The notes beneath the pieces were generated by a model. That model was not told where the DNA came from. It saw only the letters and a program-made list of their open reading frames with translations, and did not search any database. Shown in pieces: positions 10,191-64,000 of a DNA stretch of 64,000 nucleotides. The first letter of the stretch is position 1. Every line of letters starts with the position of its first letter. This stretch comes from Paragordius varius. Its lineage: Eukaryota; Animalia; Nematomorpha. Location: NCBI GenBank assembly GCA_964247055.1, contig OZ176060.1, positions 682,001 through 746,000 on the forward strand, in the 5' to 3' direction. The translations under genes and the position numbers were made by a program.

Positions 10191-10232
10191 CAGCTGATCT
10201 GCAAAAAAATTTTTTGATTTTAAACCTAAATG

Positions 10233-10288
<56 letters not shown>

Positions 10289-10565: not shown

Positions 10566-10604
<39 letters not shown>

Positions 10605-11064: not shown

Positions 11065-11105
<41 letters not shown>

Positions 11106-11377: not shown

Positions 11378-11385
<8 letters not shown>
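10190..11385. repeat. Satellite B, second block (~8 units)
   Basis: Same monomer as 3620-7370. Confidence 0.9.
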
Positions 11386-11418
<33 letters not shown>

Positions 11419-11980: not shown

Positions 11981-12020
<40 letters not shown>

Positions 12021-12120
12021 TAATTATATTTTATTATTTTTGTGAATAAAAAAGACTTAAATATATTAATTCGATATAAAAATAAATATAATAATTAAAT
12101 TTTATAAATTTTATAAATTT
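11385..12120. repeat. Satellite A, second block (~4 units)
   Basis: Same monomer as 1450-3615. The A-to-B junction at ~11930-12300 is nearly identical to ~3420-3800. Confidence 0.88.
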
Positions 12121-12124
12121 TATC

Positions 12125-13985: not shown

Positions 13986-14049
13986 CACCATGGATTAGTA
14001 ATTTTTGTTTTTACAGTATTTTATTTTAATGGTGATTGATTATTTCACA

Positions 14050-36100: not shown

Positions 36101-39100
36101 TTTAGAGCAAAATTTAAATAATAAATGTTCAGTATTTATTATACATATAGAAAAAAAATTAATATATACTAAAAGTTTTTTGATTATTTATTAAAATTTT
36201 TTTTAATAAAATTCAAATAAAATTAATTATATTTAAATAATAATATATTATTTATTAAATACAAATCTTTTATTAAATATTTAATTTATTTTAAATTCTT
36301 AAAAATATATGTTTATTAATTAAATTAATATTTTTATTTTTAAAATTAATTATTTTATATTTTTTAAAATTATTATTATCATATAATAAAAAACTAAAAT
36401 ATATTAAAAAATTTTATTATAAAAAATTAATTAATTATATTTATTTAAAATATTATAAAAAAATATAATTATTAAATAATTTTAAATTTTTTATAAAAAT
36501 AATATTTTTTAAATCAGCTGAGCAAAATTTGATTAGTGGAGGGAAACATATGGAAATACAAACGGAAAAAAGTTTTTAATTTTTTTTAAATTTAATATTT
36601 TTAATATTTTTTAATATATTTTTTTTAATTTTTTTATTTATTTATTTTTTTATTTTTATTTTTTATAAATTTTTTAATATTTTTTTTTATATTTTTTATT
36701 AATATTTTTTTCATTTATTTTTTTTACATTTTAATTTTTTTTAATATTTTTTTGATTTTTGAATTTTTAATTTATTATTTTTAATTTCTTTATATATATT
36801 TTTATTTAATTATTATTTTATATTTTATTTTCTTATTTTTTTGATTAATTTATTTAATTTAAATTTTTTTATTTTATTTTATATTTTATTTTTTTTTTAT
36901 TTTTTTAATTTATTTTATTTTTAATTTTTTTTATTTTTTAATATTTTTTTTTATATTTTTTTTTATTTCTTTATATTTATTTTATTTTAATTTTAAAATG
37001 TTTATATTTTTTTTAATTTTATTTTTTTAATATTTTTTTATTTTTTAATTTTTTATTTTTTTATTTTTATTTTTTTTATTTATTTATTATTTTATTTTTA
37101 TTTTTTATAAATTTTTTAATATTTTTTTTTATATTTTTTATTAATATTTTTTTCATTTATTTTTTTTACATTTTTTTTAATATTTTTTTGATTTTTGATT
37201 TTTTAATTTATTATTTTTAATTTCTTTATATATATTTTTATTTAATTATTATTTTATATTTTATTTTCTTATTTTTTTGATTAATTTATTTAATTTAAAT
37301 TTTTTTATTTTATTTTATATTTTTTTTTTTTTTATTTTTTTAATTTATTTTATTTTTAATTTTTTTTATTTTTTAATATTTTTTTTTATATTTTTTTTTA
37401 TTTCTTTATATTTATTTTATTTTAATTTTAAAATGTTTATATTTTTTTTAATTTTATTTTTTTAATATTTTTTTATTTTCATTTTTTTAATTATTTTTTT
37501 TATTTTTATATTTTTTTATTTATTATTTTTATTTTTTTTATCTTTTAATTTAATTGAATTTTTTATTTTTTTATTTGATGTTTATGTATTTTTTAATTTT
37601 TTTTAATATTTTTAATATTTTTATTTTAAATTTTTTTTGTTTTATTTTTAATTTGTTTTTAATATTTAATTTTAACTTTTAATTATTAATTTTATTAGGT
37701 TTTTATATTTGAATATTTTAAATTTTTTAATAATTTAATTATTTATTTTTTTTTTAAATTCATTTTCTATTCAGTTTAAATAATATTTTTTTTTTATTTT
37801 TTTAATTTATTTTGAAATATTTTATTTAATTAATTTTAATTTTATTATTTATTTTTATTTTAATTTTTTTATTATCACAATTTACTTAAATAATATTAAA
37901 TAATTATTCTATATAAAATAATTAATAATTGATTTTCTTTATTTATAATTATTTTTAATTATATATATTTTTTTATATTTATTTTAATGAATTTTAATTT
38001 ATGAATGTTTGAATTTTTCTAATATATTTATTTTTATTTTTTAATAAATTTTTTATTTTTTTTTAATTAATATAATCAAAAAAATTTTTTTTTTAATTTT
38101 CAAACATATGACAAAAATTAATTTTTTTAATTGTTTTTTAATTTTTATTATTTTTATATTTTTTTATTTATTTTTTTTATTTCCATTATTTTATATTTAT
38201 CTTTAATAAAATTTTTATTTTAATTTTTCTAATTATTATTTATTTTAAATTTTTTAATTTTTTTAATTTTTTTATTTTTTTTTAATTTTTTTATTTTTAT
38301 TTTATTTTTTATTATTTTTTTATTTTTTATTTTTTTTATTTTTCATTTTTTTAAAATTTAATATTTTTTATTTTATTTTTATATTTTTTTATTTTTTTTT
38401 AATATTTTTGTTTATTCTTTTATTAAATTTTTATTTTTAAAATATAAATAAATTTTATTTTTTTTTAACTTTTTAATATTTTTTTTTATATTATTTTTAT
38501 TTTTTAATTTTTTTTATTTTATATTCTTTAAATATTTTTTTTAATTTTTATTTTTATTTTTTATTTTTAATTTTTATAGTTCAATCAGAAAAAAGCACAA
38601 TTCCATTTAATTTTTGGAAAGAAACAGCTGATATTGGAAAAGATATTAAAACAGATGTTTTAAAAGTATTTTTTATATTTTATTTTAATATTTTTTTTCA
38701 AAATTATTAAATTTATATATTTTATATATATTACATTTATTTAATTTTTATTTTATACTTTAATTATTTTTAGAAAACAGCTGATATTAATATATTAAAA
38801 CAGATGTTTTAAAAGTTAATTTTTTATTTTATTTATTTTTGTTTTAAATTTAATTATTTTAATTATATTATAAATATTTTAATTATATTATAAATATTTC
38901 AATTCCATTTTAATTCAATATTAAAAAATTTTATTTTTTTATTATAATAATTTATTATTTTATTTATTAACAAATTTATATTTTTTAATATATTAATTTA
39001 TTTTAATTATTTTTATTATAATTTATTTTTTTTAATATTATATATTTTATTATTTTTTAAAACATTTATGAAAAAGCAGCTGATGTTAAAAAAACAGCTG

Positions 39101-42100
39101 ATATTGAAAAAAAAGTTAATTTTTTATTTTATTATAAAATTATAATTTTATATATTTTTATTTTAATAATTTATTATTTAATTTCTTTTAAAATTATTGA
39201 ATTTATATAATTTGAATAATTAATAATTTTTAAAAAAATTATTTTATTTTAAATTTTTTAAACATACTGATATTAGAAAATTTAAAATTTCAAATTAAAT
39301 TTTATTTTTAAAAATAATTAATTTTTTTAAATATATTTCTTAAAAAAATATTAATTTTAGATAATTAACTTCTATTTTTTAATATTTTTATAAATTATTT
39401 TTTTAAATCAGCTGATCGAAAGAAATATTACAGACGATTATGAACCGAAAACCCCAGAATTTTCAAAAGGTATTTTATTAAAAAAAATATTTTTTTTATA
39501 AATTAAATAATTTTAAAAAATAATATTAAAAATAATTTATTTAATAATTTACTATTAAAAAAAAATTAAATTATAAAAAAATTTAAAAATTATAAATTTT
39601 TTAAAAAATTATTTTATATTTGAGCAAAATTTAAATAATAAATTATTAATATCCTTAATATATATATATATATATATATATATTAATTTAAAATATTATT
39701 TTTTAACAAATTAATTTATACTTATATAAAAAATTTTAATATTTTATTAAAGAGTTTATAAAATAAAATTAAAAATTAATCAATTATAATTAAATAAAAA
39801 TATTGTTATCTTATTAAATACAAATCTTTTATTAAATATATTTAATTTATTTTGATTTTTTTTAAATAAGTTTTTAATTTAAATAATATTTTTATGTTTA
39901 AAATTAATTATTTAATATTTTTTAAAATTATTATTATCATATATAATGAAAAAAAATATATTAAAATATTTAAAATATGATTAATTTAATTAATTCTATT
40001 TATTTCATAATTATTAATAAATATAATTATTAATAAATATTTTATTTATAATAATTTTAAATAAATTTTTCTTTTTTATAAAACAATCAGCTGAGCAATA
40101 TTTAATCAGTGGAGGGAAACATATGGAAAAACAAACAGAAAAAAGTTTTTTAAATTTTTATTTTTTTTAATATTTTTTTTAAATTTTTTATATTTTTAAT
40201 TTTTTATTTATTTAATATTTTTTCATTTATTTTTAAATTTAATATTTATTTAATATTTTATTTTTTTTTAAATTTAATATTTTTTTTATATTTTTTTATA
40301 TTTATTGTTTTTTTTTATTTTAATTTTTTTAATTATTTTTTTTTATAATTTTTTTATATTTTTTAATTAATTTTTTTATTTTTTTTTTAATTTATATTTT
40401 TTTATATTTTTTTTATATTTTTTTAATTTTAGTTTTTTTTTAATTTTTTTTCATTTTATTTATGTTATTTATATATATTATTATTTTAATTAATTGTTAT
40501 TTTTTTATTTTTAATTATTTAATTTATGTTAATTAAAATTTAATTTTTTTTTAAATTTTTATTTTTTTATTTTTTTATTTTTATCATGTGTTAATTTTTT
40601 TTATATTTTTATCTATATAATATTAATTTTTTTAGTTTATATTTATATGTTTTATTTTTTTAATTAATTTATTTTTATATTTTTTTATTTTTTTATATTT
40701 TATTGTTTTTTATTTTTATCTATATAATTTTGATTTTTTTATATTTTTATATTTATTTTTTTTAATTAATTTATTTATCTTTTATTTTATTTATATAATT
40801 TTATAATAGAAAATCTTTTACATTTATTATATCAATATATTGCATTTTATTTTTTAATCTTAATTTTTTTATCATTATTAATTATTATTTTTTTTTAATA
40901 TTTTAATATTTATTTTATTTTTTTATAATATATATTTTATTTTTGATTTTTTCTTTACTTTTTATTTTTAAAATATTTTGTTCTTTTATTATATTCATTA
41001 ATTTTTTAATATTTTTTTTTAAATTTTTTATAATTTTTTGATTTTTTTTATATTTTTATTTTTATTTTTTTATTTTAATTTTTAATACATTTTTTTTATT
41101 TTTATTTTTTTTAATTGAATTTATTTTTTATTTTTTTTTATTTTTATATTTTTTATTTTTTTTAATTGATTTATTTATTTTTTATTTTTTTTTATTTTTT
41201 TTTAAATTTTTTATATTTTTTTGATTTTTTTTATATTTTTATTTTTTTAATTTTTTTTTAATTTAATTTTTTTTTATTATAATAATTAGTTCAACCAGAA
41301 AAAAGCACAACTCCATTTAATTTTTGGAAAGAAACAGCTGATATTGGAAAAGACATTAAAACAGATGTTTTAAAAGTTATTTTTATATTTTAAATTTTTT
41401 AAATTTTAATATTTTATATATTAGTATATTATTATAATTTATTATAAAATTATTAAATTTATATATTTTTTTTCTAAGCAAATTTTTAATAATTATTTTT
41501 ACTATTCGTAAAAACAGCTGATATTGGAAAAGACATTAAAACAGATGTTAGTATTTTTTTATTTTATTTCAAAATTCAAATTAATAAATTTTATATTTTA
41601 AAATCATTAAAATTAATTATATTAATTGCATTATTTTTATTTTAATTTTTATTTTAATTTTTAAAAAAATTAATAATATAAAAAATGATAATAATTTTCA
41701 AGGAACAGCTGATATTAAATTAATAAATTGGATAAATTTATATTTTAATATTTTAAAATTATTAAATTTATTAATATTTAATAAAAATAATTTTATTTTT
41801 TTCTTAATTTAAATTTTTTAATATTGATAATTTTATTAAATTTTTTAAAACATTTTTTTAAAAAATCAGCCGATATTAAAAATATAGATGTTTTGAAAGT
41901 TTATTTTTTTAGGTTATTTTAAAATTATTAAATTTATATATATTATAAATATTTATTAATTTATTATTTAATTTTTTTATAAAAATAAATTATTTTATAT
42001 AATTGAATATTATATATTTTTAAATATAATTTATCAATTAAAATTTTTAATTATTATTTTAATTAGTATTTCTCTTGATTTTTTAATATTTTAATTTTTA

Positions 42101-42804
42101 TATTAAATTTATTTTTTTAATTAAATTATTAAATTTATTATTTTAATGTAATTCTTTAATTTATAAAATTTTATTTTATATATTTTTATTTTTTAATAAT
42201 CAGCTGATCGAGAAAAATACTACAGACGATTATAAACCGAAAACCCCAGAATTTGGAAAAGGTAATAAAATAAAATATTAAAAAATTTTTTTTTAATTTT
42301 TTAATTTAATAATTTTTAATTTTTTTATATAAAATATTTTTTTAATTTTTTAATTTAAATTTATAAATATATTTTTTTTAAAATAATTTAATTTTTTTTA
42401 AATTAAATAATTAATTATAGAATATTTATATTTTTTTATCAAATTTTATAATTATTAAAATTAATATTTTTTTAAATTATAATATTTTTTATTCTTTAAA
42501 AAAACATTATTTTAATTTGATAATTAAAAAAATTATAACATTTTTATATTTTAAAAAATTTAAAAAATTTATAACATTTTTATTTTTAAAAAAAATTAAC
42601 AAATAAATACATAATATTTTTAAATATGATTTATTAAATAATTTTAAAAATTAAAATTGTTATTTTTATTTAATTTTGATAAATTATTTTTTTTAAAAAA
42701 AATTATATTTTTAAAATAAAATTTATTTATTATATATATATATATATATATATAATTTAATAATATTATTAAAAATTTAATATTTTAAAAAATTATAATT
42801 TTAT

Positions 42805-44219: not shown

Positions 44220-47200
44220 TATATTATAAATTTTAATAAATTTTTTTAAAATAATATAAATTATTTTTATTTTTAATTAATTTTTTAATATTAAGAACAG
44301 CTGATAAAAAAATTTATTTATATTTTTAAAATAAAAAAATTTATTTTATAATTTTTAATTAATTTGTTATTTATGTTAATCAATAAAATGTTTAGATATT
44401 TTATTTATTAATTTTTTAAAATAATATATTTCATAAACAGCTGTTTATTAATAAAAATATTTTTTAGTTTATAATTTTTAAATAATAATAATTTTATTTT
44501 AAAAATAAAAAATAATATTTTTATTTTAAAAATAAAAAATAATAATTTTATAAATATAAAATTTTCTTTAAAAATATCAATAATTTTTGTTTAAGTTATT
44601 ATTATTTTACAAAATCCAATTTTTAATATTTTTAATTTATATGAATATTTATAAAAAAAAGCTGTAAAATTCTATATTTTTAAAAGTATTAAAAATTTTT
44701 ATTTAAATAAAAATTAATAATATAATTATTATTTGTTTATTTAATTTTAAAAATCAATAAATATAAATAAATTAACTTAAAATTATATTATTTAATATAA
44801 AATTATTTTTTATGTTTCAAATCAGCTGATAATATAATAATAAAATTTATATTTATAAAATATTATTTAGATTAATTTGAAAAAATAATTAATTTTATCT
44901 TAAAAACAGCTGCTTTTAAATAAACTATATATTTTTAAAACAGCATAATTAATAATATAAAAAATTAAAAATTGATAAAATTAAATATAAAAAATATATA
45001 ATTTAAAAAAAATTATTTTTAATAAATTAATTATTTTAAAAAAATTAATTAATTTTTTTTATTTTTAAACAGCTGATAATATAAATATTAATAATATAAA
45101 AAAATTAAAAATTAATAAATAACAAATATATAATTTTTAAAAAAACTATTTTTAATAAATTAAATATTTTATCAATAATTATTTTTCATTTTCAAAAACA
45201 ACTGCTGATTATTAAAAAAATATTTAATATTATATTTATATTTTCAAATAAATTTATAATTATATATTTATATAAATATTTTATAAAATATAATTATTAT
45301 AATTTAATAAATAAATTATTTTAAAAATAAATTTATAATTATTTTTTAAAAACAGCTGATAATATAATTATAAATTCTGGAATCGATAATGAATTAACGG
45401 ATATTGGAGGACGTTCTGAAAAAAATTTATATGAACAGGTGATTTAATTTAAAAAATTATTTTTTTTTTAAAAAAATAAAATTTTTAATTTATTAAATAA
45501 ATATTTTAATTTTTTTTAATTTTCTAAAAAAAATTTAAAAATAAATTTAAAAAAATAAAAAATAAAATTTTTTTATTTTGTTTAAATTAATTTTAAATTT
45601 TTTTAAAAATATTATTTATTTTTTTAAAAATATTATTTATTTAAAATATATTTATTAAAATTTATAATATTTTTTATTTAACAAAAATAATTATTTAATA
45701 TATATATTTTCTTAGATAAATAATTTTTATAAATTTATAAAAAAATTATTTTTTTCATATTATTTTAATTTATTTATTTTTTAATTATTTTTTTTATTTA
45801 AAATATATTTCAATATTTTATTTTTTTTTTTTATTATACAATTATTTTTATAAAAAATATATTTTTAAAATTAATTTTTTTATTCTTTTATTTTTTATTT
45901 TTTTTTAAAATTATTTTTTTTTAATTTTTTTATTTTGATTATGTTTAAATTTATTTTTTTTAAAACTATATATTTATTTAGATTGAAATTTATTTTTTTA
46001 TTTAAAAATTAAATATTTTTTAATTACTTTTGAATTAAAATTTAAAAAAGATTTAAAAAATAAAAAAATTGAAAAATTATTTTAAAATTTATTTTTAAAT
46101 TAATAAATAAATTTTTTTTTAATTATTTTTTATTTTTTTAATTTATTAATATTTAAAAATAAAATAAAAAAAAAATAAAAAATTTAAAAAAACTAAAAAA
46201 ATATATTAAAATTTATTTTTTAAATTTATTATTATTTTAAACAAAATAATAAAAAAATTATTTTAATTCATTAATTATTTTTAAATTTATTTTTTTAAAA
46301 AATAAAAAATTAAATTTTTTTTTTTTTAATTTTTTTATTTTTTATTTTAATTTTCCTTAGAACATTGAAAGCGATTGGCTTTCTGTCGGAAAGAATGGAA
46401 GTTCTGACGTGGCTTTCGCCCTTATCGATGAGATCGGTCATGACTCAGCTGTTTCGGTTATTAGGAACCCTGAAAAACAGCTGATCAAAGTTTCTAAAGT
46501 AATTTTAGAAAGTTTTTTTTTGAAAGAAATCTATAATTGTGACAAAAAAACGAAAAAAATTGATAAAAATTTAAAAAAATTCAAAAAAATGACAAAAACT
46601 GACAAAATTGAATAAAAATTGACTGAAACAGCTGATTTTGTAAAAATCTACAAAAAAACACCTAAACAGCTGTTCAAATCAAAAAGTTAAAATTTTAAAT
46701 TATTTTTAGTTTAAATTTTTCACAAAAAATTGAAATTAAATTGTGCACTCATCGATGAGATTGGACATGACTCAGCTGTTTCTGTCATCAGGAACCCTGA
46801 AAAACAGCTGATTAAAATTTCTAAGAAGGTTAGTTCAGAGAATTTTTTGAAAGAAATTATAAAAATGAAAATATTGATAAAAATTCAAAAAAACAGCTCT
46901 TTTTATTATAAATTTTAAGAAAAAAGGCTATTTTCGAAAGAAAAATACAAAAAAACGTACAAAATTAAACAAAAATTGTTTAAAACAGCTGTTTTGCTTA
47001 AAATTTCTAAAAACAGCTGATTTTTATATGATTCCAAATTTTAAAAATTTTGTACATTTATTGCCCTCATAGATGAGATTGGACATGACTCAGCTGTTTC
47101 GGTTATTAGAAACCCTGAAAAACAGCTGATCAAAGTAACTAAGAAAGTGATTAAAGTTTCGAAAAACATTTTTTATAAAGGAATTTGATATATTAAAACA

Positions 47201-50200
47201 GGTGTTATAATATTTTTATTTAAAAAAAGCTGTTTTTTGAAGAAAAATACAAAAAATGACAAAATATCGGACAAAATTGAAAAAAATTGTTTAAAACAGC
47301 TGATTTGGGCTAAAAATGTTGAAAATATATAATATCCGTGAAAAATTAAATTAAAATTGTTTAAACCAGCTGATTTTGCTCTTATAAAATTCACCTAAAC
47401 AGCTGTTTACATCAAAAAGTTTTAATTTAAAATTATTTTTAGGTTTAAATTTTTTACAAAAAATTGAAATTAAATTGTGCACTCATCGATGAAATTGATC
47501 ATGACTCAGCTGTTTCTGTCATAAGGAATCCTGAAAAACAGCTGATAAAGTTTTAAAGAAAGTAATTTCAGAATTTTTGTTAAAAAGAATTAAATATGTT
47601 TAATTTAAAACATTTGTTTTTGATATAATTCTTTAAAAAAAGGCTGTTTTTCTTGAAAATTTTAAAAAATTGACAAAAAATGACAAAATATTTATTAGTC
47701 AGCTGTTTCTTATAAAAAACCCTGAAAAACACCTGAAAGTCTCCAAGAAAGTAATTTAAAGTTTTTTTTAAAAAAAATCTATAATTGTGACAAAAAACGA
47801 AAATAAAATGAACAAACAGCTGTTTTCTGAACAAAAATACAAAATATCCGTGAAAAATTGAATAAAAATTGTTTAAAACAAGTGATTGGGCTAAAAATTC
47901 AAAAAAATGACAAAAACATACATTGAATAAAAATTGACTGAAACAGCTGATTTGAGTGAAAATTGTTAAAAAATCTAAAAAAAACAGCTGATAATACTGT
48001 AAAAAGTTTAAAAAACAAATTTATTAGATATTTTTTAAATTTTTTAAAAAAATGAAAGTTCTGACGTGGCTTTTGCCCTTATAGATGAGATTGGCCATGA
48101 CTCAGCTGTTTCTGTCATCAGGAATCCAGCTGAAAAACAGCTGATTAAAATTTTTAAGAAAGTAATTTTTCAAGATTAAAAGTTTGATAAAATCTATATT
48201 TGTGACAAAAAAACGAAAAAAAAACCGTCAAAAATTGATAAAAATTCTAAAAAAACAGCTGATCTGGGTTAAAAAAATTTATTATTACAAAAAAAAAATT
48301 AAGACCAAAACAGCTGATTTTGTAAAAATCCGACAAAAACAGCTGATAATACTGTTAAAAGTTTAAAAATCAAATTTATTTTAAATTTTAAAAAAATGGA
48401 AATTCTAGCTGAAAGACAGCTGATTAAGGTCTCCAAGAAAGTAATTTTGATGATAAAAAGTTTGATAAAACATTTTTTATGAAAAACAGCTATTTTCCAA
48501 AGAAAAATACAAAAAAACGTAAAAAATTAAACAAAAATTGTTTTAAATTCAAAAAAACGAAAAAAATTGATAAAAATTCATAAAAATTGATTGAAACAGC
48601 TGATTTGATAAAATAATTTAGAAAATACAAAATATCCAAAATCTAATAAAAATTGTTTAAAACAGCTGATTTTACCATTAAATCTACAAAAAACATCTGT
48701 TCACTCATAAAGATTTAATTAAAAATTATTAGAATTATTTCGGTTTAAATTTTTTGTTAAAAAAATTGTTGAAATAAAATTTTGCCCTCATCAATGAGAT
48801 TGGACATGACTCAGCTGTTTCGGTTATCAGGAACCCTGAAAAACAGCTGATTAAGGTCTCCAAGAAAGTAATTTTTAAAGATAAAAAGTTTGAAAAAACC
48901 TTTTATGAAAAAAAATGAAAAAATTGATAAAAATTCAAAAAAACAGCTGATCTGGGCTAAAAATTTTAAAAAGTGACAAAAACCGGGAAAAATTTAATAA
49001 AAATTGATTTTAAACAGGTGATAATTTAATTTACAAAAAACAGCTGATTATATCAAAAAGTTAAAATATAAATTTATTTTATTAATTTTCTCCAAAAGTT
49101 AGTTTAAGCTTTTGCCCTCATTGATGAAATTGGTCATGACTCAGCTGTTTCTGTCATCAGGAACCCTGAAAAACAGCTTTTTTCGGAAAAAAATGCAAAA
49201 AACCTTGAGAAATTGAATAAAAATTGTTTGAAACAGCTGTTTTTAATATATTTTTTCAAAAAAAGCTGTTTTGGTTAAAAAATAGAAAAAAAGCGTGAAA
49301 AATTGAATAAAAATTGTTTGAAACAGCTGATATGAGTTAAAATTGTTAGAAATACAAAATATCGGACAAAATTTTGTAAAAATTGTTTAAAACATCTGAT
49401 TTGGATTAAAAATGTTAATAAAACGGCTGTTCATTCATAAAATTAAAAATAATTAGATTTATTTATACTTAAATTTTTCGTAAAAAATAGTTGAAATAAA
49501 ATTTTGCCCTCATAGATGAGATTGGACATGACTCAGCTGTTTCTGTCATCAGAATCCAGCTAAAAACACCTGATTAAAGTTTCTAAAAAAGTAATTTTTG
49601 GAAAGTTTTTTTAAAAAAAATTAATAATTGATTGAAACAGCTGTTTTTAATATATTTTTTCAAAAAAAACTGTTTTCGGAAGAAAATTCAAAAAAACTGT
49701 GAAAAATTGAATAAAAATTGTTTAAAACAGCTGATTTGATAAAAAAAAAAAGAAAATATAAAAAATCCGACAAATATTGAATAAAAATTCATTGAAACAG
49801 CTGATTAAGTTAAAATTGTTAAATCTACAAAAAACAGCTGATAACACTGTAAAAAGTTTAAAAATCAAATTTATTGGATATTTTTTAAATTTTTTAAAAA
49901 AATGGAAGTTCTGACGTGGCTTTTGCCCTCATCGATGAGATTGGTCATGACTCAGCTGTTTCTGTCATCAGGAACCCTGCTGAAAAACAGCTGACTAAAG
50001 TTTCTAAAAAGGTGATTTTTAGAAAAAAAATTGATATCAAAATTATGAAAAAACGAAAAAAATTGATGAAAATTCAAAAAATTGATTAAAACAGCTGTTT
50101 TCGAAAGAAATATACAATATGTGAAAAATTGAATAAAATAGATCTACAATTAACTCAGCTGTTTCGGTTATTAGGAACCTTGAAAAAAAGCAGATTAAAG

Positions 50201-53200
50201 TTTCTAAGAAGGTTATTTTAAGTTTTTTGATAGAAAATGAAAAATATTTAATTAAAACAGCTTTTTTTGAAAGATAAATACAAAAAACCGTAAAAAATTG
50301 AATAAAAATTATTTGAAACAGCTGTTTCGGTTATTAGGAACCTTGAACAACAGCTGAACATAATTAAAAAAGTATTATTTAACATTTTTATTTTAAAAAA
50401 ATCTATTTTATAAAGGAATTTTATATATCAAAACAGCTGTTTTTAATATATTTTTTTTTAAAAAACTGTTTTTATTAAAAATGATCTGGGTTAAAATGTT
50501 TTAATTATGACAAAAACTGACAAAATTTGAATAAAAATCGATTGTAACAGCTGATTTTGTACAAATCAATAAAAACAGCTGATTTATATATGATTTAGAA
50601 TTTTAAAATAAAATTGTAATTTTATACATTTATTGCCCTTATCGATGAGATTGGACATGACTTAGCTGTTTCTGTCATCAGAAATCCAGCTGAAAAACAG
50701 CTGACCAAAGTACCTAAAAAGGTTATTTTAGAAAGTCTTTTGAAAGAAATTTGATTTTAAAAATAACTAAAAAAAATTAAAAAATAAAAAAAGGAATAAA
50801 GCAGCTGTTTTTTCATTAAAAATTGATAAAATTAGAACAAAAAGTGACAAAATTGAATAAAATATTGACTGAAACAACTGATTATGATAAATTAAAAAAA
50901 ATTTAACAAAACAGCTGTTTTTTTAAAAATTATAATTTGATAAAATTAAGTCTAAGTGTTAAATCAAAAACAGCTAATTAAAGATTTTTATAACGAAAAA
51001 CAGCTGTTTATGGAAGAAAAATATAAAAAAATTAAAGAATACAGCTCTTATCATATTTCTAAATCACCTGTTTTTATCATAAATCATGAGCAACAGCTGA
51101 TCACAAGTTTTTATGGTGATTTGTCAGTTGTATTAAAGGAAAAAAATTAAGATTTCCATAAAATTAAAAAAACAGCTGTTTTTCTAAAAAATGCAACATT
51201 ATGTTTATTTCAAGTCAGCAGTAGCTGATATATATATTTTAATAATCAAAATTTTATTTATATATTTTAAATAATCAAAATTATATATATATATATATAT
51301 TTTAGATATAAAAATTAAAATTATATATCATGGAAAATATTTTTTAAATAAATTATAAAATAATTTAATATCTTTTTTAATTTTCAAAACTATAAAATAT
51401 AAATTACTTAAAATTTAAATTTTGTAAATTTATAAATATATAATATCTTATATATAAATTTTAAGTAAACCTGTTTCTAATATGTATTAAAAAATTTATA
51501 TTATAAAATATTTTTTTGGATAAATTATTAAATAATATATTTAGTAAAATAATTATAAAATAAATTATTTTTCAAAAAATTATCAAAATTAACAAAAATT
51601 TATAAAATAAATTATTTTTTGGAAAAACTATCAAATAATTATAAAATAATTAAAACGATTATATATTCAAATAATATAATAATAAATGAATAATTTAAAT
51701 TTTTCAAATATATAATTAAAATTATAAATATTTTAAATTCTTCTTATAATTATTTTAGAAACCACTATCATCTGATGGAAATGCGAAATCAGTTGATCTG
51801 CCTCCTTTTTCGCACACATTCATCCCATCAGCTGCTGTTGACTTTAGAAAATTTCAAACAGCTGTTCCAACTAATAATATTGGAAATAATAATAATTTTC
51901 AAATTCCTACTGATTATGATTTTGGTATATAATTTTATGAACAGCTGATTTTTTAATAAATTTTATAAGACAGCTGTTTTAGATATATATATTTAATAAT
52001 TTAGCTGTTTCTATATAAATTTGCATCTTTGAAAAATATATTTGAAAACAGCTGTTTTTCTAAAAAAATTCAATAAGACATGAAAATTTTCAAATTCTTA
52101 CTGATTATAATTTTGGTATTTAACTATTTTTTTCATAAAACAGCTGATATCTTATTAAATTATTTGTCTAAAACAGCTGTTTTTAGATGGATATATATTT
52201 ATTAATATATTTTTAAAATTCATTTTAGTTAAAAATAAATTTAAATTTTTTTGAAAATAAAATATATTTTAAAAACAACTGTTTTTATTAAAAATTCAAG
52301 AACATTGATATTTTCAAATTCTTACTGCTTATGATTTTGGTATTTATATATTTTTTTTATAAAACAGCTGTTTTTTATTATTCTTAAACAGCTGTTTTAT
52401 ATAAATATATATATATTAATTATTTTGTTTAAATTTATTTATATTTATAAAACTTTTAATAAGCTGTTTCTATATATATATATCTTTTTAATATCTTTTA
52501 TTTTTATTTATATATATTTAATAGATAATAAAATACATTTTAACAGCTGTTTTTGTTTATAATTCACAAAACATAATAATTTTCAAATTCCTACTGATTA
52601 TGATTTTGGTATTTTTTTTATTTTTTTCATAAAACAGCTTATTTATTTTAGATTTTTAATAATTTAATTTTTTTTTAAAGAAACCGCTTCAGATAAATAT
52701 TTTTATATAATTGTATTATTTATATAATTATTGAACTTTTAAAACAGCTTTTTATATATTTATTAATATTTTGTTAACATTTATTTATATTAATATAAAT
52801 TTAATAAATTTTAATTTTTAAAAGATATATTTTAAAAACAGCTGTTTTTACTGATTATGTTTTGGCAATAAATTTAAAAACAGCTGTATATATATATATA
52901 TATTACATATAAATTATTCTTTTAACATCTTATTTATATAATTAATAATTTTATTTAAAACTTTTATTATATTCTTAATATATTTTTTATATATTTAATA
53001 TTTTATTTAAATTTTTAAAAATAATAGATATTTTAAAAACAGCTCATTTTCTAACAAATCAAATAAAAATGATAATTTTATAATTTATTTTATCGATTTT
53101 TTTAAAGAAAATTAAAATAATTTATATTAAATATAAATTAATTTATATAAAAAACAGCTGGCTTATTAAATTTTAATATTTTTTTAATTTAAAATAAAAG

Positions 53201-56200
53201 AATTAATTTTATAATAAAAATAAAGATAAAATATTTTTTTAAATATTAAAAAAACAGATAATTTATTAATTTAATTTAATAAAAAATATAAATTTTTTAA
53301 CATCAGCTGATAATAAAATCTCTTTAAAACAAATGATTATTTCACTATTGTTATAAAATTATGAAAATATTTTTTAATAAAAATTAATTAATTTTATATT
53401 AAAATTAAAAAACAGCTGATTTATAAAAAAAACAATTTAATTTTTTAAATTTTTTAAATATAACATAAAATAATTTATTATTTAATAAAAATGTTATAAA
53501 TAATAATATTAAAAAAATTATATATTTTCATAAAAAAGCAGCTGATTATTTAATTTTTTAAATTTTTTAAATTTAATAAATAATTTATAATTCTTAATAA
53601 AAATGTCTAAAAGTAATTTTTTTTTAATTTAATAGAAAATAAAAAAAACTTCGATAAAATAAATTTCTATATAAAAAACAGCTGTTTTATAAAAATTTTC
53701 ATTTTTAATTTAATATAGAATAATTTATTTTTGAATAAAAATTATATATTATTAAATTTATTTTTTTAATAAAATTATTTATTTATATAAAAAACAGCTG
53801 ATTTATAAAAAAATTAATTTAATTTTTTAATTTTATAGAAGAAATTGGGCATAATAGAAATTTCGAACAAACTTTTCAAAGGCCGAAACCTCTAACAGCT
53901 GGTTTTTTAATTTTTATATTTTTTAAAAAAATTTAAATATTTTTTAAAATTTGATATTTTTTTATTTTTATTCATTTTTGTCAATTTAGAAGTATTAATA
54001 ATTAATATTTAAAAAATATAAATTTATATAAAAATAATTTAGAATAAATATTAAATTTAATATAATTTTATTTAAAATTTATTTTTCTTTAAAAAATATA
54101 AACTTTAATAAAAATACATTAAATTCTTTTTTTATTATAATTTTTTAAATTTTTTATTGAAAATATAATATTTTTTAAATTATTATTAAATTTAATTTTT
54201 TAAATTTTTTTATTTTTTAATTTTTTAATTTTTTAATTTTTCTTTTGTATTAATAAATGAAAAAAAAAATTTTAAATATAATTTTAATTATTCAAATAAT
54301 TATATTTATATTTAAATTATTTTTATTTATATTTTTAAATTTTTTCTTAAAAAATAAAAAAATTAAAATATTTTTTTTTAAATATATTTTTAGATTATCC
54401 AAATTTTATTGATCATATTGGAAGTTCTCATTTTCAATCCACGAGGTTTTTTTATTTTTTAAATTTAAAGAATTTTTGAAATCAATATTTTGAATTTTAG
54501 AATAGTTTATGAATTATAATTTATCTTATTTTTACTTAATTTTAAAATTTATTTTTTAAATTATATTAAATAAATATTTTTAATTTTCCAAAAAAAACTA
54601 AATAAATACATATATTTTATGATTTCTCTCACCTGTAATTTATTTATTCAAATATTAAATTTTATCAAAAAAAGTTTCAAACAATATTTATTAATATTTT
54701 ACAAATTTAATTTTTTAAAACTAATTAATTAATTTTTCATAATTTTTTTATTTAAAAAAAAAATTTAATTTTTACTTTTAGGATTATTTATTTAAATTAT
54801 TTTCGAAAAAAAAAATTTTGCATATTTTATTGAATTGAAATAAATATTTTATTATATTTTTTTATTGAAAATTTTTTAAAATTATGTTTCAATACAATAA
54901 AAAATATATTTATAAATTTTTTTGAAATTCTAAAAAAATATTTTAATTTTTATTATATCAAAAAATTAAATATTAAATATATTTTAATATATTTAATATT
55001 AAATTTAAAAAAATATTTTAAAATTCTATATTTTAATAAAATTAATTATATATTTTTAAATAAAAATTAAATATTCATATTAAAATTAATAAGAAATATT
55101 TTTTTTATAAATTTTTTTTTAAAAAATTCTATTTTTTAAATATTTAAATTCTACTTTTAAAAAATTATTTAAAATCTTTTTTTGAAAAAAAAGCTAAAAA
55201 AAATATATTTGATTTTTTAAGATTATGAAAATTATTTTTAAAAATATATTTTCTTTAATTTTTTATTTTATATAAAAAAATAAAATTTAGAAATTTTAAT
55301 ATTATTAGTTTTAAAAAATTATAAAAAAAAATTTTTTTATTAAAAAATAATTTTTTTAGTATTGAAACTCAAAAACCTTTCTCACCTGATTTATTATTGC
55401 CGAGATCAGCTGTTCCCCTAACTGCAAAAAGTGTGAAAAGGTGATTTTAAATTAAATTTAAAAATTATATAAAAATTAATATTTATTAAAAATTAAATAT
55501 TTTATTAAATATTTATTTAAAATTAAATATTTAAAAATTGAATATTAATTTTTAAATATTTAAAAAATAATTTTAATATTAAATTAATTATTATATTAAA
55601 ATTTATTTAAAATATTTATATATCTTTTAAAACAAAACTATAAAATATTAAAAATTTAAAATAATTTATTAGTTTATTAAAAGTAAAAAAAATAATATAT
55701 AATATTTATTTATCAATCATTTTAAAATTAAATAATTTAATTATATGTATTTATATTAATTTAGAAAATTTTTTTAATTTTTTTTCAATATTTAAAATTT
55801 TTTTGTATTTTTTAATTTTTTTAATAATTTTTATATTTATTTAATTAAATATATCAGAATATTATATCTTTTAAAAAATTTTAAATTTTTTTAGTTTTTT
55901 GAAATTTTTTATTTTAATTTTTTTTTTATTTTTAATAATTTTTGGTAATATTATTAATTCAAATATTTTAATTTTACGAAAAAATATTTTTTAAATACTT
56001 TTTTTTAATAATAAAAATTAATTTATTTTTTAAATTTTTTAGTTTTTTTAATTGTATTAATTTTATTTTTAAATTTTTTTGTTTTTGTTAATTTTAAAAT
56101 ATTTTTTTAATTATTTTTATATTTTAAAATAATTTAGTATTTTGCAAATTATAATTTTTTATTTTTTTTATTTTTTTATTTTAATTTTTTTTTTAATATT

Positions 56201-59200: not shown

Positions 59201-62200
59201 ATTTTAATTTATTTTTTTAATTATATATATAAAAGTTATGTAGAAAATAAATTTTTTTTATTTATTAATAATTTTTCGTTTTTTATTTTTGAATAAAAAT
59301 AAATTTTTTTAGTCCTTTTTTGTTAAAATAAAAATAAAAAATAAATTAAAAAAATTAATTATTTTAATTTTATTATTTTATTATATCTTTCATTATTTAA
59401 AAATTTTCTTTTTTTATTTTTTATTTTTATTTATTTTTTAATTTTATTTATTTTTTAATTTTATTTAAATAAATAAAAAAATTTAACATGTTATAAATTG
59501 AATTTTTATTAATATAGAAATAATTTTTTTTAAATATATAAAAAAATTAAATATATTTAAATATTTTAAATTTTTATTAAAATATAAATTATTTTTTTTT
59601 TAAATTTCTTAATTAAATTATATAATTTTTTTTTAAATTTTTTTTTTATTTTTTAATTTTTTTTATTTTTTTAGCAAATATTTTTTTTTTAAAAAAAAAA
59701 TAATTAATCTAATAATTAAAAAAAAAAATTATTATTTTTTATTATTCAATTATTTAAAAAAAATATTTTTTTAGTTTAAAGTATATTATGTAAAAATTAA
59801 ATATAATTAATTTTTTATAAGATTTACACTATAAATATATTTTTATTAAAAATATTTTTATTTTGTGTTTTTTTAAAATTAATTTTATTGAAAATATTTT
59901 TATTTTATTTTTTTTATAATTATTAATTGTTTATTAAAAATTTTATGTATTTTTAAATTTTTATTTTTTTTCTTTATAAATATAATATTTAATATTTTTT
60001 AAATAAAAAATATTTATAAAAAAAAAATAATTATTTTTTTATTTTATTTATTTTTTTACTATTTATATTTTATAATTATTAAATTCATTTAGTTTTAATT
60101 TTTTTAAAATGAACAAATAAATATATTTTATATTTTAGTTTTTTATTTTTTTTAATTTTTTTGTTTTGTTTAATTTTTTTTAATTAAAATATATATATTT
60201 TTTAAGAAATTCAATAATTTTTTTTAATTTTTTTATTTTTATAAATTTTAAGGTTTTTTTTTATTTTTTTATTTTTTTAATTTTTTTTATTTTATTTTTA
60301 ATATTTTTTATTTTTTCAATTTTTAATATTTTTTTTTAGTTTTTGTCCCAATGAGCATAATGGCAATGAATATGGATGAATGGCAATGCGAATTCGATGT
60401 AAAATTATTTTTTAAGAAATCAGCTGTTTTTTAATTATTTTTAAATAAAATAATTTAAAAAAAAATTAAAATTATAAATATTTTGACTTTTATAAATTAA
60501 TTATTTATTATTAAATTTTAAAATCACAATTTTTTTATTATTAAATATTTTAAATTATGAAAAATTTTTTAAAATTATAATATTTTAATTTTAAATATTT
60601 AAAATTTAAAATTTTTAGATTATTTAATAATATTATTTTCAAAAATTAAAATAAATAATTATTTTAATATTCTAATTCATAAATTTAATTATTTATAATT
60701 TATTTAAGATTTTAATTTTTATTTAAAGAACAGCTGTTTATTAAATGTTAATTATATATTAAAATAATTATAATCTTTAATATTTTCTAAAAAAAATTAT
60801 TTTCATATTTTTCAAAAACAGCTGTTTTTATTTCCACTAGAGTATAAAAATAAATGCAAACACGAAAGAAATTAATTTTAAATGCAAATCAGCTGATGAT
60901 TAATTAATCAATTAAAAACTAAAAAAAAATATTTATAAATTCAAATGATAAATTAATAATTTTATTAAATAATTAATTATAAAATTATTTATTTAATATA
61001 TAATATCAAATATTTTTATATATTATACATTTAAAAGAATCAAAACAGCTGTTTTTTCTTAAATATTTTTTATAAAAAAAAATAAAAAATTATATTATAA
61101 TTTTAATATTCTAAAATATATATATTAATAATAAATTTAATTATTTCATATTATAAATATTATATTTATAATTTTTAAAAATCAGCTGTTTTCAATATTT
61201 CCACTAGAGTATGAAAATAAATGCAAACAGGAAAGAAATAAATTTTGAATGCAAATCAGCTGATGGAATATATCCTATGCCGGGAAAGAATTGTGTTTGG
61301 TAAATAAAATTTAAAAAAAATTTTATAAAAAAAATTTAAAATAATTTTATAAAAAAAATTAATTTAAAATATTTTTTATAAAAAAAATTAAAAAAAAATA
61401 AAATTATTTATTATAAAATATTTTTAAATATTTTTAAAATAATATTTTATGTAAATTTTTTATTTTTTGAAAAATAAATAAATTTATTTTAAAAAATTTT
61501 ATAAATACATTTTTTTATTTTTTTTTAAATTATTATTTTTTTTACATTTTTTATTATTAAAAAAAATTGAAATTTAAAAATTAATGAAAATTGAATGATT
61601 TAAAAAAATATTTTTATAAAAAAAAATAAAAAAATAATTTATAAAATAAATTTATTAAAAAAATTAAAACATTTATTTTTAAAATAAATTTATTTTTTAT
61701 AAAAATATAAAAATATTAAATTATTTTTGTTTTAATTTTTTAATAAAATATTTTAAATTAAATATATTTATAAAAAAACATTTTTAAATAATTAGTTTTA
61801 ATAAAATAAAAAAATTTAAAATTTAAATAAATTTTAAAAAACTTTTTAAATATTATTTTTTAATCAAATTTTTTATTTTATATCTAAAAAAATAATTTTT
61901 TATTTTTTTTTATAAATTAAATAATATATTATTATATAAATATTTAAAAAATTTTTTATTTATATAATTAATTTTTTATATTTTAAATAAATATTTTTTT
62001 AAATATTATTATTTAAATATTTTTATAAAAAAAATTATATATTAGTAATTCAAATAAAAAAAAATATTTTTTAATAAAATTTTTTTTTTATTTTCTGTTT
62101 TCAGGTATGTTGCTTGTTCCAATTTCTATGCTTGGTTCATGTGTTGTCCACATGGAACACTTTTTGATGTTCGGTCAAACATTTGCGAAACAGCTGATAA

Positions 62201-62219
62201 AATAACATGTGATTATTGA
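21136..62219 (+). CDS. Gene 2: large, probably secreted low-complexity protein with a Pro/Thr/Ser/Arg-rich linker and a C-terminal peritrophin-A (ChtBD2/CBM14) chitin-binding domain, ~951 aa, 34 exons
   Basis: Hand-built exons: 21136-21316, 22131-22181, 22963-23005, 25099-25207, 28208-28324, 29672-29732, 30266-30315, 31100-31215, 33791-33933, 35123-35221, 35836-35886, 36518-36571, 38580-38665, 39412-39469, 40091-40144, 41290-41375, 42204-42261, 42846-42926, 43704-43787, 45356-45438, 46361-46498, 50974-51129, 51759-51924, 53839-53901, 54394-54445, 55360-55440, 56206-56264, 56741-56773, 57412-57480, 58356-58409, 58734-58787, 60340-60398, 61208-61299, 62105-62219. The total is 2856 nt, all GT-AG, with one open frame across 33 junctions. 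Least certain: the start codon (21136 vs 21262) and both ends of exon 22 (alternative acceptor 51004). A hydrophobic stretch IFFLFSIFIFLNF precedes IHS-QN. Confidence 0.85.
24011..24895 (+). pseudogene. Three partial copies of the exon 4 5' end inside intron 3
   Basis: tttag|TAAAGTTGACATAGTCAATGAAAGG at ~24011, tttag|TAGAGCTGACATCTTATTGGTTAAAGAAAGGAGAATT at ~24643, and ctgacatcttatt at ~24879. Confidence 0.85.
25464..27610 (+). pseudogene. Six or more partial copies of the exon 4 3' end (NPNPQIDFPGNF) inside intron 4
   Basis: Copies at ~25464, 26218, 26581, 26898, 27082 and 27571. Three of them retain the gta donor. Confidence 0.9.
25650..26180. repeat. Intronic A-rich ~150-190-bp tandem triplication
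   Basis: aaaaaacgaaaaaaaattaaaaaaaaaatatttttttattaaaattaaaataataaacatttattttaaaattaaaataaattttgttttt occurs three times. Confidence 0.8.
30821..33480 (+). pseudogene. Echoes of exon 8 (5' end, 3' end, middle) and seven echoes of the exon 9 5' end
   Basis: Exon 8-like at ~30823, ~31387-31436 and ~32142. tttag|CATTTCNGTWAAAATAATTCCTGG at ~31858, 32038, 32356, 32543, 33071, 33306 (AG lost) and 33444. Confidence 0.9.
34086..34665 (+). pseudogene. Four echoes of the exon 9 3' end
   Basis: atgttaaccgaac... at ~34087, 34289, 34447 and 34640. The first two keep AAAA|gta. Confidence 0.8.
35890..42261 (+). repeat. Tandem duplication of a three-exon cassette (exons 12-14 and 15-17)
   Basis: AEQNLISGGKHMEIQTEK/AEQYLISGGKHMEKQTEK; IQSEKSTIPFNFWKETADIGKDIKTDVLK/IQPEKSTTPFNFWKETADIGKDIKTDVLK; LIERNITDDYEPKTPEFSK/LIEKNTTDDYKPKTPEFGK. 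Exon lengths are identical (54/86/58). Shared intron anchors at 36105/39621, 36253/39812 and 36370/39930. Confidence 0.92.
36660..37480. repeat. Intronic T-rich ~430-bp tandem duplication
   Basis: Block starting ttttataaattttttaatatttttttttatattttttattaatatttttttcatttatt at ~36661 and ~37102. Confidence 0.75.
46500..50930 (+). pseudogene. Array of ~13 copies (~300-450-bp period) of the exon 21 3' part (ALIDEIGHDSAVSVIRNPEKQLIKVSK) plus spacer, in intron 21
   Basis: Copies at ~46742, 47059, 47476, 47697 (degenerate), 48051, 48396 (deleted), 48781, 49111, 49503, 49901, 50152, 50316 and 50633. Confidence 0.93.
52080..52870 (+). pseudogene. Four echoes of the exon 23 3' end (FQIPTDYDF|gt)
   Basis: ttttcaaattcYtactgattatgattttggtat at ~52087, 52311 and 52580, and a truncated copy at ~52849. 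Confidence 0.85.
60815..60903 (+). pseudogene. Upstream echo of the exon 33 5' half with an intact acceptor
   Basis: tttccactag|AGTATAAAAATAAATGCAAACACGAAAGAAATTAATTTTAAATGCAAATCAGCTGATGATTAA versus the functional exon at 61208. Confidence 0.88.
61250..62210 (+). other. Peritrophin-A/ChtBD2 domain split over exons 33-34
   Basis: C-KSADGIYPMPGKN-C-VWYVA-C-SNFYAWFMC-C-PHGTLFDVRSNI-C-ETADKIT-C has spacing C-x13-C-x5-C-x9-C-x12-C-x7-C, matching the established six-cysteine peritrophin-A pattern, with conserved aromatic residues and a CPxGxxF motif. Confidence 0.93.
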
Positions 62220-62359: not shown

Positions 62360-62750
62360 AAAAAAATGCGAAACAGCTGATAAAATAACATGTTATTACT
62401 GAACAGCTGTTATAATTAAAAATTTAATAAATTAATAAATTTTTAATAATTATTTATGTTATAAATATATAGACATATATATATATATATATAGTAATTT
62501 TTAATTAATATTCTTTAAATATTGAACATATATTTTCGAAAATACTAAAATTGCGAAACAGCTGATAATGTGATTACTGAACAGCTGTTATTGAATTGAT
62601 ATTGAAATAAATATTATAATTAATTGATTTATATAATCAATTATATATATAATTTATGTATTATTAATTTTTTTTACATATTTATTATTTTAGATATATT
62701 TTTAATAAAAGTAGATAAAATTACATGTGATTCTTGAACAGCTGTTAATA
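62360..62750 (+). pseudogene. Three echoes of the terminal exon end, including the stop codon
   Basis: gcgaaacagctgataa...atgtKattactgaacagctgtta at ~62368 and ~62553, and a more decayed copy at ~62713. Confidence 0.8.
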
Positions 62751-62799
62751 ATTATTTACGTTATATAATTTATAAATATAATTAATATTGAATATATAT

Positions 62800-64000
62800 A
62801 ATTTGGTTTAAAATGGTTAAAAATACAAAAAATCCGACAAAAATTGCATAAAAATTGATTGAAACAGCTGATTTATTTGAGCTAAAATTGAAAAATACAA
62901 AATATCCGTAAATTGAATAAAAATTGTTTGAATTTTGTAGAAAATTCTGAAAATTGACAAAAATTGTAAAAAAATTGAATAATTAAAATAATCTACCAAA
63001 AACAGCTGTTCATATCAAAAAGATTTGATTTATTATTAGATTTATTTCTTAAATTTTTTGTTAAAAAAATAGTTGAAATAAAATTTTGCCCTCATAGATG
63101 AGATTGGTCTTGACTCAGCTGTTTCTGTTATTAGGAACCCAGCTGTATAAAATAGCTGACTAAAGTTTCTAAAGTAATTTTTCAAGATTAAAAGTTTGAA
63201 AAAATCTATATTTGTGACAAAAAAACGAAAAATAAACCGTCAAAAATTGATAAAAATTAAAAAAAAATGACAAAAATTGATAAAAATTGAAAAAAAACAG
63301 CTGATTTGGTATAAAATTGTTAAAAATACAAAAAATTCGACAAAAAATGAATTAAAATTGTTTAAAACAGCTGATTTTTTTATTAAATCTACCAAAAACA
63401 GCTGTTCATTCATAAAGATTTAATTAAAAAAAAATAGAATTATTTCAATTTAAATTTTTTGTTAAAAAATTGAAATAAAATTTTGCCCTTATCGATAAGA
63501 TTGGTCATGACTCAGCTGTTATTGTCATCAGAAACCCTGAAAATCAGCTGATCAAAATTTCTAAGAAGGTTATTTTACAAAGTTTTAAACTTTAATAATT
63601 CTTTGAAAAAAAGAAAAAAAATGAAAAAAATATAAAAAGTTGATTAAAACAGCTGATTTGGTTTAAAATGGTTAAAAATACAAAATTTGAATAAAAGTAG
63701 TTTAAAACAGGTGATTGGGCTAAAAATTCTAAAAAAATGACAAAGACTGACAAAATTCAAAAAAAAATTGAATCAAACAGCTGATTTTTATTAATTTAAA
63801 GAAATAAAAAATAAAAAGTGGTGATTGTCTAAAAAGTTTAAAATTAAATTTATTCTTTTTTCAATATATTTTAAATTTTTTCAAAAAATGAAATTATTTT
63901 CATTCATCGATGAAATTGGTCATGACTCAGCTGTTTCGGTTATCAGGAACCCTAAAAAACAGCTGATTAAAATTTCTAAAGTAATTTTAAAAGATTTTTT
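62800..64000 (+). repeat. Second array of the exon 21-derived repeat, downstream of the gene 2 stop and running off the window
   Basis: Coding-like blocks at ~63085, 63481 and 63898, with the same spacer as 46.5-50.9 kb (tctatatttgtgacaaaaaaacgaaaa; aacagctgttcattcataaagatttaatt). Confidence 0.92.

Follow-up and report, generated by a model that had tools for sequence, protein, structure and literature searches.

Intronic copies of part of an exon in Paragordius varius vary at silent sites like coding sequences

Exchange with a functional neighbour, by interlocus gene conversion or unequal crossing-over, can preserve the similarity of gene fragments to it, as with CYP21A2 and CYP21A1P; the concerted evolution theory of Ohta and Innan addresses this situation. 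Programmed gene conversion draws on silent donor cassettes in the case of the pseudo-V segments of chicken immunoglobulin genes, of Borrelia vlsE and of the variant surface glycoprotein (VSG) genes of trypanosomes. Models of intron gain by splice-site duplication were reportedly proposed by Rogers in 1989 and, for Daphnia, by Li, Tucker, Sung, Thomas and Lynch in 2009. Tandem exon duplication arrays, comprising mutually exclusive or cassette exons and unannotated intronic duplicated exons, have been surveyed (PMC9013439). Here we describe an array of copies of the 3′ part of one exon, exon 21 of a predicted gene, in the adjoining intron 21. The array lies in a 64,000-nucleotide (nt) stretch of the nematomorph Paragordius varius (contig OZ176060.1, positions 682,001 to 746,000, forward strand), which we refer to as the window. 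We read it, with a probability of about one half, as a pseudo-exon array that arose by tandem duplication and unequal exchange anchored on the hexamer CAGCTG and that was founded by at least three functional versions of this exon, themselves deeply diverged.

As in tandem exon duplication arrays, the copies stand head to tail in the neighbouring intron, have donors and an open frame, and differ mostly at silent sites. Unlike in those arrays, a third to a half of the exon is missing from the 5′ end of the copies, no good acceptor is present, private changes are neutral and one copy in four is frameshifted. With conversion of the CYP21A2/CYP21A1P type the locus shares non-functional copies beside a functional one, mosaic haplotypes and exchange confined to a conserved core. 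It differs in that a 90-nt exon part is involved, in about 10–50 copies and in an intron, in that exchange seems to be anchored on a 6-nt motif, and in that the silent divergence (K3, at third codon positions, 0.29) is far above what homogenising conversion leaves. Truncated, unexpressible copies that keep an open frame beside one expressed copy recall the pseudo-V, vlsE and VSG cassettes. Those cassettes, however, differ by replacements that yield protein diversity, whereas the copies described here encode the same peptide, in the gene of a predicted chitin-binding matrix protein, and their shared variation amounts to 15 synonymous changes and 3 conservative replacements. As in the intron-gain duplication models, a tandem duplication that breaks once in the exon and once in the intron would leave a whole exon with partial copies outward of it; those models concern single events, in contrast to a multi-copy array with allele-like variation.

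The window is extremely A/T-rich (10.9% G+C), and most 1-kb stretches between exons have 3–8% G+C. A simple exon-chaining model predicts a plus-strand gene from ∼25 to 62.2 kb, with ∼30 small exons in consistent phases. Exon 21 of this gene begins after the acceptor ttccttag/ and ends at the donor AAA/GTAATT (a slash marks the splice point). The copied sequence is its 3′ 81 nt, from position 46418, and both of the two CAGCTG boxes of the exon lie inside this part. The exons that flank the array are the following.

46361..46498, plus strand: exon 21, 138 nt, 46 codons, phase 0 to 0, assigned from splice sites, frame and exon chain
51759..51924, plus strand: exon 22, phase 0 at its start, the predicted partner of the exon 21 donor

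The window was searched with a 29-nt core, exactly and with up to 3 mismatches. Twelve sites were observed against 0 expected, and a thirteenth copy (63494) was recognised by eye. Named by the position of an aspartate codon within the core, these are the exon itself (46427), nine sites in intron 21 (46754, 47072, 47488, 48084, 48793, 49123, 49515, 49934 and 50644) and three past the stop codon of the gene (63097, 63494 and 63909), so that the family is not limited to intron 21. In that intron, nine near-complete and four partial copies (at about 47699, 48396, 50152 and 50316) of the 3′ ∼85 nt of exon 21 with its GT donor are present, in agreement with a preliminary description of the window that had reported well-preserved intronic copies of this exon part. 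The conserved block runs from a GCC (Ala) codon to six bases beyond the GT donor, and the flanks are hardly alignable. All copies that extend that far keep the donor in phase 0, and GT with A at +4 is retained in all 15 copies and partials. The individual copies are listed below.

46745..46834, plus strand: copy 46754, core intact; GAG/ATT, then 69 nt to the donor GTTAGT; no private change
47063..47152, plus strand: copy 47072, core intact; ATA gives an out-of-frame TAG/ 5 nt before GAG/; private S>T
47479..47567, plus strand: copy 47488, decayed: GAA (AG lost), G>D, TCT>TTA, a 1-nt deletion with an in-frame stop
47699..47756, plus strand: partial copy without the 5′ third; heavy decay; GTAATT retained
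48075..48167, plus strand: copy 48084, long type; +GCT; TAG/ before GAG/; S>F
48396..48446, plus strand: partial copy, long type; internal deletion joining TTCT to AGCTG
48784..48873, plus strand: copy 48793, core intact; D>N
49114..49178, plus strand: copy 49123, ends at the second CAGCT(G), joined to another intronic module; GAA; no donor
49506..49596, plus strand: copy 49515, decayed: two 1-nt deletions; CAGCTG>CACCTG
49925..50017, plus strand: copy 49934, long type; homology from about 49898; +GCT, I>T; no private change
50152..50217, plus strand: partial copy that begins at the first CAGCTG box; P>L; second box destroyed (AAGCAG)
50316..50385, plus strand: partial copy; intronic AAACAGCTG module fused to the core exactly at CAGCTG; 3′ half decayed
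50635..50727, plus strand: copy 50644; +GCT, S>L, I>T, S>P; frame intact
63088..63986, plus strand: second array past the stop codon, with copies at 63088–63179, 63485–63574 and 63900–63986; continues beyond the window end

In copy 48084 homology to the exon extends ∼30 nt farther 5′, from about 48048. The haplotype AAG GTC TCC is common to copy 48793 and the partial copies at 47699 and 48396. In contigs assembled from a DNA run of the same organism, ∼45 pieces stacked on the 3′ part of exon 21 only, and their summed depth of ∼12,000, compared with ∼220 for the exon-specific contig, suggests roughly 50 copies genome-wide.

Variation among the copies follows the reading frame. In exon 21 and the intron copies, to which the main variant statistics refer (the far copies past the stop codon were counted apart), variant alleles at codon positions 1, 2 and 3 numbered 4, 4 and 24 (1, 2 and 15 in the subset shared between copies), and 18 of 29 third positions were variable. 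Twenty-three changes were synonymous and nine were replacements, compared with an expected synonymous share of 23–29% (∼27%; binomial p=1.6e-7). Mean pairwise divergence was 0.055 at positions 1 and 2 (K12) and 0.29 at position 3, a K3/K12 ratio of ∼5. The ratio of replacement to synonymous change (dN/dS) across all of these differences was ∼0.14 rather than near 1. In contigs of the same organism, which represent ∼50 copies, all five variants present at ≥5% fell on third positions; this support is partly independent.

These counts agree with the preliminary description in detail. All of the 12 synonymous codon sets that it listed for an 18-codon core recurred in our codon table, together with its three singleton replacements (G>D in copy 47488, D>N in 48793, S>L in 50644), a 1-nt deletion in the core (copy 49515) and shared indels of whole codons (+GCT in 5 copies, and presence or absence of AAG). 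Its proposal that the copies derive from, or exchange with, sequences selected as protein is upheld by the codon-position and synonymous biases. Base composition, or mutation bias from G/C to A/T, was rejected as the cause of the period-3 pattern because both site classes show it: G/C sites outside the CAGCTG boxes were variable at 9/10 third positions vs. 4/19 first and second positions (p=0.001), and A/T sites at 9/15 vs. 2/31 (p=0.0002). Neutral decay of a single founder was likewise rejected from the dN/dS values of ∼0.14 overall and ∼0.07 for shared variants. The data support the conclusion that variation among the copies was shaped by protein-level selection, which one decaying founder cannot give.

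The selective imprint is confined to variants that several copies have in common. A variant was scored as shared when present in at least two copies and as private when present in one copy only; three seemingly private silent changes of copy 48793 recur in partial copies and were reassigned to shared ancestry. Shared variants comprised 15 synonymous changes and 3 replacements (dN/dS ∼0.07), the latter all conservative (I/T, V/I and S/F-type). Private changes comprised 3 synonymous to 7 replacement in the intron copies (dN/dS ∼0.9) and 0 to 9 in the far copies (63088–63986), and dN/dS was ∼2 for all private changes together. Shared and private variants differed by Fisher's test with p=5e-5 for all copies and p=0.011 for the intron copies alone. 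With ∼27% synonymous changes expected, the private counts of 3:7 and 0:9 give no sign that purifying selection still acts on individual copies. Of 12 copies, three have frameshifts and one is truncated; replacement changes are also present in the partial and far copies, where CAGCTG boxes are broken as well.

As shared variants are biased towards silent sites and private ones are not, the coding imprint is best taken as inherited or imported, with the copies themselves now in neutral decay. Within the intron, private decay of the copies amounts to ∼1 change per 87 nt, compared with a K3 of 0.29, and the third-position differences are therefore older than the copies. Sites with three alleles imply at least 3 founders. 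A model in which one evolving exon was copied at successive times was rejected on the same contrast (private decay of ∼1% vs. K3 0.29), since neutral copies would decay no more slowly than the exon changes at its silent sites. Divergence of the flanks was dropped as a clock, alignments of these A/T-rich sequences being close to shuffled controls. The preliminary description had asked for dN/dS of shared and private variants separately. The values obtained (∼0.07, against ∼1 with frameshifts, or ∼0.9–2 according to the copies included) favour the conservative model offered there, an archive of alleles. Its bolder suggestions of interchangeable cassettes or an unconventional splicing route gain no support: private changes show no present constraint, and the copies encode the same peptide, so that swapping them into the exon would create no protein diversity.

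The junctions of the copies fall on CAGCTG. This hexamer occurs 205 times in the window, compared with 0–6 occurrences for other palindromic hexamers that contain G/C (21 for TTCGAA), and it holds 11.7% of the G/C bases of the window. Its usual context is AAAACAGCTGATTT; literature searches on CAGCTG in A/T-rich genomes found nothing. In copy 49123 the sequence passes into a different intronic module at the second CAGCT(G), and the partial copies at 50316 and 48396 (the latter by a deletion ending in AGCTG) also have junctions at the box. The shuffling of variants between copies that had been noted earlier was found again, with all four gametes at 100/153 site pairs. The upstream flank of unit 48084 is as in 49934 and its downstream flank as in 63097 (each ∼4% different), and ∼12% of the sites of its core differ from both. 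Discordant flanks and four-gamete pairs together suggest that the core has undergone exchange. The mosaic probably arose in this way rather than by recurrent mutation, and recurrent third-position mutation could explain some of the four-gamete pairs. The ten codons around the two boxes show no third-position diversity (p=5e-5), and both boxes with ∼6 nt on each side are invariant, third positions included. Either an extended box is constrained or exchange is most frequent there.

From these observations we propose the following history. The repeated unit would consist of the 3′ 81–87 nt of exon 21 with the GT donor and some adjoining intron sequence. Local duplication and unequal exchange, with breakpoints on the CAGCTG boxes in which this genome abounds, would multiply and reshuffle these units, and the copies would be absent from mature mRNA. 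The codon-like variation would have originated outside the copies and been inherited or imported from at least 3 deeply diverged working forms of the exon. Candidate sources are alleles of a very diverse population, homeologous chromosomes and exon duplicates that were once functional. The variants would then have recombined inside the 90-nt core, outside which no good homology of any length exists, the background being A/T-rich and of low complexity. Once seeded, the copies would have decayed neutrally through replacement changes, frameshifts, truncation at CAGCTG and loss of boxes.

The status of the copies as non-exonic depends on their splice sites. The preliminary description had stated that none has a usable in-frame AG. 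Taken literally this is wrong, since a phase-0 AG, GATGAG/ATT, is present in 9/12 copies (the other three have GAA), and a second phase-0 AG occurs at AAAAACAG/CTG. GATGAG/ATT is, however, a poor acceptor. By a profile built from the 29 predicted acceptors of the host gene, GAG/ATT scores −2 to −4.7, whereas the lowest predicted acceptor of the gene scores −0.7, and GAG occurs in 0/29. In four copies a better, out-of-frame TAG/ precedes GAG/ by 5 nt. TCAG/CTG is the strongest acceptor-like site in every copy (7.6–11.3, in the upper range of the acceptors of the gene), and its use would break the frame after exon 21. Two kinds of third-position change, GAG to GAA (which removes the AG) and ATC to ATA (which creates the out-of-frame TAG/), vary as freely as other third positions; both matter to a cassette exon and are silent in the full exon. 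The non-conserved upstream flanks of the copies contain no in-frame acceptors. A 21-nt micro-exon via AACAG/CTG was rejected, as it leaves the constraint on the 17 preceding codons unexplained. As GAG/ATT is poor by the gene's own profile, the non-exonic status of the copies remains the more likely one.

Several observations weigh against a pseudo-exon array, and part of them are what one would expect if some copies were live mini-exons, that is, in-frame cassette exons of 22–24 codons (IGHDSAVSVIRNP[A]EKQLIKVSKK) spliced via GAG/ATT and the GT donor. The conserved block, from ∼15 nt before the in-frame AG to +6 past the GT, has the footprint of a small exon. The distance from the first AG to the donor is 66, 69 or 72 nt in 9/12 copies, an open frame whose length is divisible by 3, and the indels that copies have in common comprise whole codons. 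The phase-0 AG (9/12) and the phase-0 GT (all) fit an exon 21 that ends, and an exon 22 that starts, in phase 0; size and spacing are like those of the other exons of the host gene. Decay is concentrated in copies that lack the AG or the donor or that lie outside the gene, as live exons would likewise predict. On such a reading the cassettes would add repeats to a protein made of like-sized exons, and the silent pattern (K3/K12 ∼5) would be ordinary purifying selection.

Nevertheless, we consider live mini-exons unlikely. Private changes have no synonymous bias (3:7 in the intron copies), and in the four best candidates the private changes downstream of the AG are 0 synonymous and 2 replacement. 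GAG/ATT falls below every predicted acceptor of the gene, two of the four copies with a better out-of-frame TAG/ are kept as well as the rest, and the best site, TCAG/CTG, breaks the frame after exon 21. Third-position-only variation also extends upstream of the in-frame AG (5/6 variant alleles), outside the presumed exon. One RNA run that was assembled gave no contig on exon 21 or its copies, a weak point since absence is not proven thereby; no RNA run with exon 21 words was found, and these results decide neither way.

Other observations count against the pseudo-exon array independently of splicing. No source of diverged functional versions was found; contigs of the same organism contained no further 5′ half of the exon at ≥82% identity, although gaps there prove nothing. 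Two DNA samples share nearly all 31-mers, which gives no sign of the high allelic diversity that an allele archive needs, but both may stem from a single specimen. Private changes are few (n=19), and with ∼50 copies genome-wide some 'private' changes may occur in other copies.

A germline cassette reservoir has also to be weighed, in which crossing-over or conversion anchored on CAGCTG cycles the cores through the expressed exon and purges replacements, so that second-order selection acts on the shared pool. Mosaic haplotypes and flanks and the junctions on CAGCTG fit such cycling, all exon states except one (ATC at codon 6) are found in some copy, decay is further advanced in far copies than in those close to the exon (p=0.017), and zero third-position diversity in the 10 codons around the boxes (p=5e-5) is expected if exchange starts there. 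However, a K3 of 0.29 means that exchange is not much faster than mutation, and indirect selection per copy would be about the mutation rate, effective only in an extremely large population. Private changes are unconstrained, and the copies encode one peptide, leaving no diversity-generating use. We regard this reservoir as highly improbable at this locus. A general form of the idea holds that CAGCTG-anchored recombination routinely copies exon edges from diverged homologues into adjacent introns and exchanges them with the expressed exon, the arrays being a genome-wide germline archive or reservoir under second-order protein-level selection; to us this seems quite unlikely.

Selection could also act on the nucleotides themselves, if the copies are arrays of CAGCTG boxes or of decoy splice sites (for example poison exons via TCAG/CTG and the GT) and their periodicity is left over from an exon origin. 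Consistent with this, neither the boxes nor the ∼6 nt next to them on either side vary, third positions included, CAGCTG is hyper-abundant (205 vs. 0–6), CAG/CTG makes up 8/29 predicted acceptors, TCAG/CTG scores in the upper acceptor range (7.6–11.3), and GT with A at +4 is kept in all 15 copies and partials. Such a function leaves unexplained why 18/29 third positions vary while first and second positions do not, and decayed copies lose their boxes. It would be an addition to the pseudo-exon array rather than a replacement for it, and we find it very doubtful. Stacking of haplotypes or paralogues into a false tandem array during assembly deserves almost no credence: it is the sole model to explain side-by-side allele-like variants without biology, but nothing direct favours it, four runs from two samples (possibly the assembly's own data) contain 85–89% of the array's sampled 31-mers, contig depths are 222–322 for copies and 222 for the exon, and the units vary in length, module order and truncation points, unlike stacked haplotypes.

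CAGCTG doubles as the commonest acceptor shape of the host gene. Eight of the 29 predicted exons start in a box, as ...aaa(a/t)cag/CTG, at 35123, 35836, 36518, 39412, 40091, 42204, 45356 and 57412. They are mostly in phase 2, so that G/CT reads Ala.

The product of the host gene is, as predicted from its exons, a repetitive secreted protein with a C-terminal chitin-binding domain. Two of its later exons are listed here.

53839..53901, plus strand: later exon, EEIGHNRNF..., which encodes EEIGHNRNFEQTFQRPKPLTA; placed by the exon chain
62105..62219, plus strand: terminal exon with stop codon; chitin-binding peritrophin-A domain, Pfam CBM_14

The CBM_14 match (E 4.2e-5; 24.0 bits, above the Pfam gathering cut-off of 22.1) spans profile positions 18–53 of 53 only, because the domain is divided between two exons; outside it the protein consists of repeats. 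Many exons of the gene carry the motif (D/E/Q)xIG close to their start, which suggests that the protein was assembled from exonised CAGCTGATTGG-type units. In exon 53839–53901 a TAG/ acceptor lies 5 nt upstream of ATTGGGCAT, at the same place as the ATAG of four copies, and, judged by eye from the motif order, this exon looks like an old, diverged relative of the copied unit (DEIGHD...RNPEKQL). A word-index search with the exon 21 peptide returned no protein homologues. Five matches from exhaustive HMMER searches with that peptide were rejected as chance matches inflated by repeats, because they are sums of 15–28 repeats of ∼3 bits each in very long T/S/D-rich proteins. Metagenome scans with a DNA pattern and with the peptide gave no match.

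Other exons of the gene are duplicated too. Exons 12–14 and 15–17 form a 3.6-kb tandem duplication (36518–39469 and 40091–42261), with exons 93% identical and introns that are not alignable and differ in length by hundreds of bases. These real duplicated exons show no silent-site excess (K12 0.068, K3 0.076). Upstream of exon 9, 7–8 copies of its 5′ edge (31866–33460) are spaced 180–530 nt apart; the unit is a CAGCTGAT box, the acceptor and the first ∼26 nt of the exon, without a donor. Their shared variants are at third positions (TCC, TCA or TCT; GGA or GGG) and singletons elsewhere, with too few sites to test; one copy lacks the AG and one has a 1-nt deletion. Downstream of the gene, three copies of the end of the terminal exon (62366–62760) comprise its last ∼40 nt, with the stop codon, and the next CAGCTG box. 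One silent change (TAT>TAC) is shared among them, next to two replacements and a 7-nt deletion.

Outside the gene, several satellite families with a period of ∼1 kb and one ATCAGCTGAT box per unit lie at 3600–12300 and fill the first 13 kb of the window, where no conserved gene was seen on either strand. A foldback-like element at 14040–14870 has terminal inverted repeats of 129 nt that are 91% complementary (14084–14212 and 14734–14862) and encloses many nested hairpin units with the motif TTTTTCCATACACTACTG...CAGTAGTGTATGGAAAAA. An isolated island of 40% G+C amid 5% G+C, at 16437–16529, is open on both strands, with a Pro/Ala-rich reading on the minus strand, and may be either a first exon or some different element.

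Sequencing runs of four other organisms (B–E) contain 6–23% of the sampled 31-mers of the array (46300–50930). One contig from the organism C run, at a depth of 2.8, has flanks as in a contig of organism A; the run of another relative gave no contig on the exon stretch. The organism C contig may reflect a satellite shared among relatives or sample carry-over, rather than an orthologue.

If the copies prove to be spliced, they would be ordinary repeated mini-exons, overlooked through their weak GAG acceptor. If, on the other hand, the pseudo-exon array is the true reading, (i) the array would be a record of several old functional versions of exon 21, kept side by side in an intron; and (ii) a 6-nt sequence, CAGCTG, would mark local duplication and exchange in a genome whose neutral DNA has ∼5% G+C.

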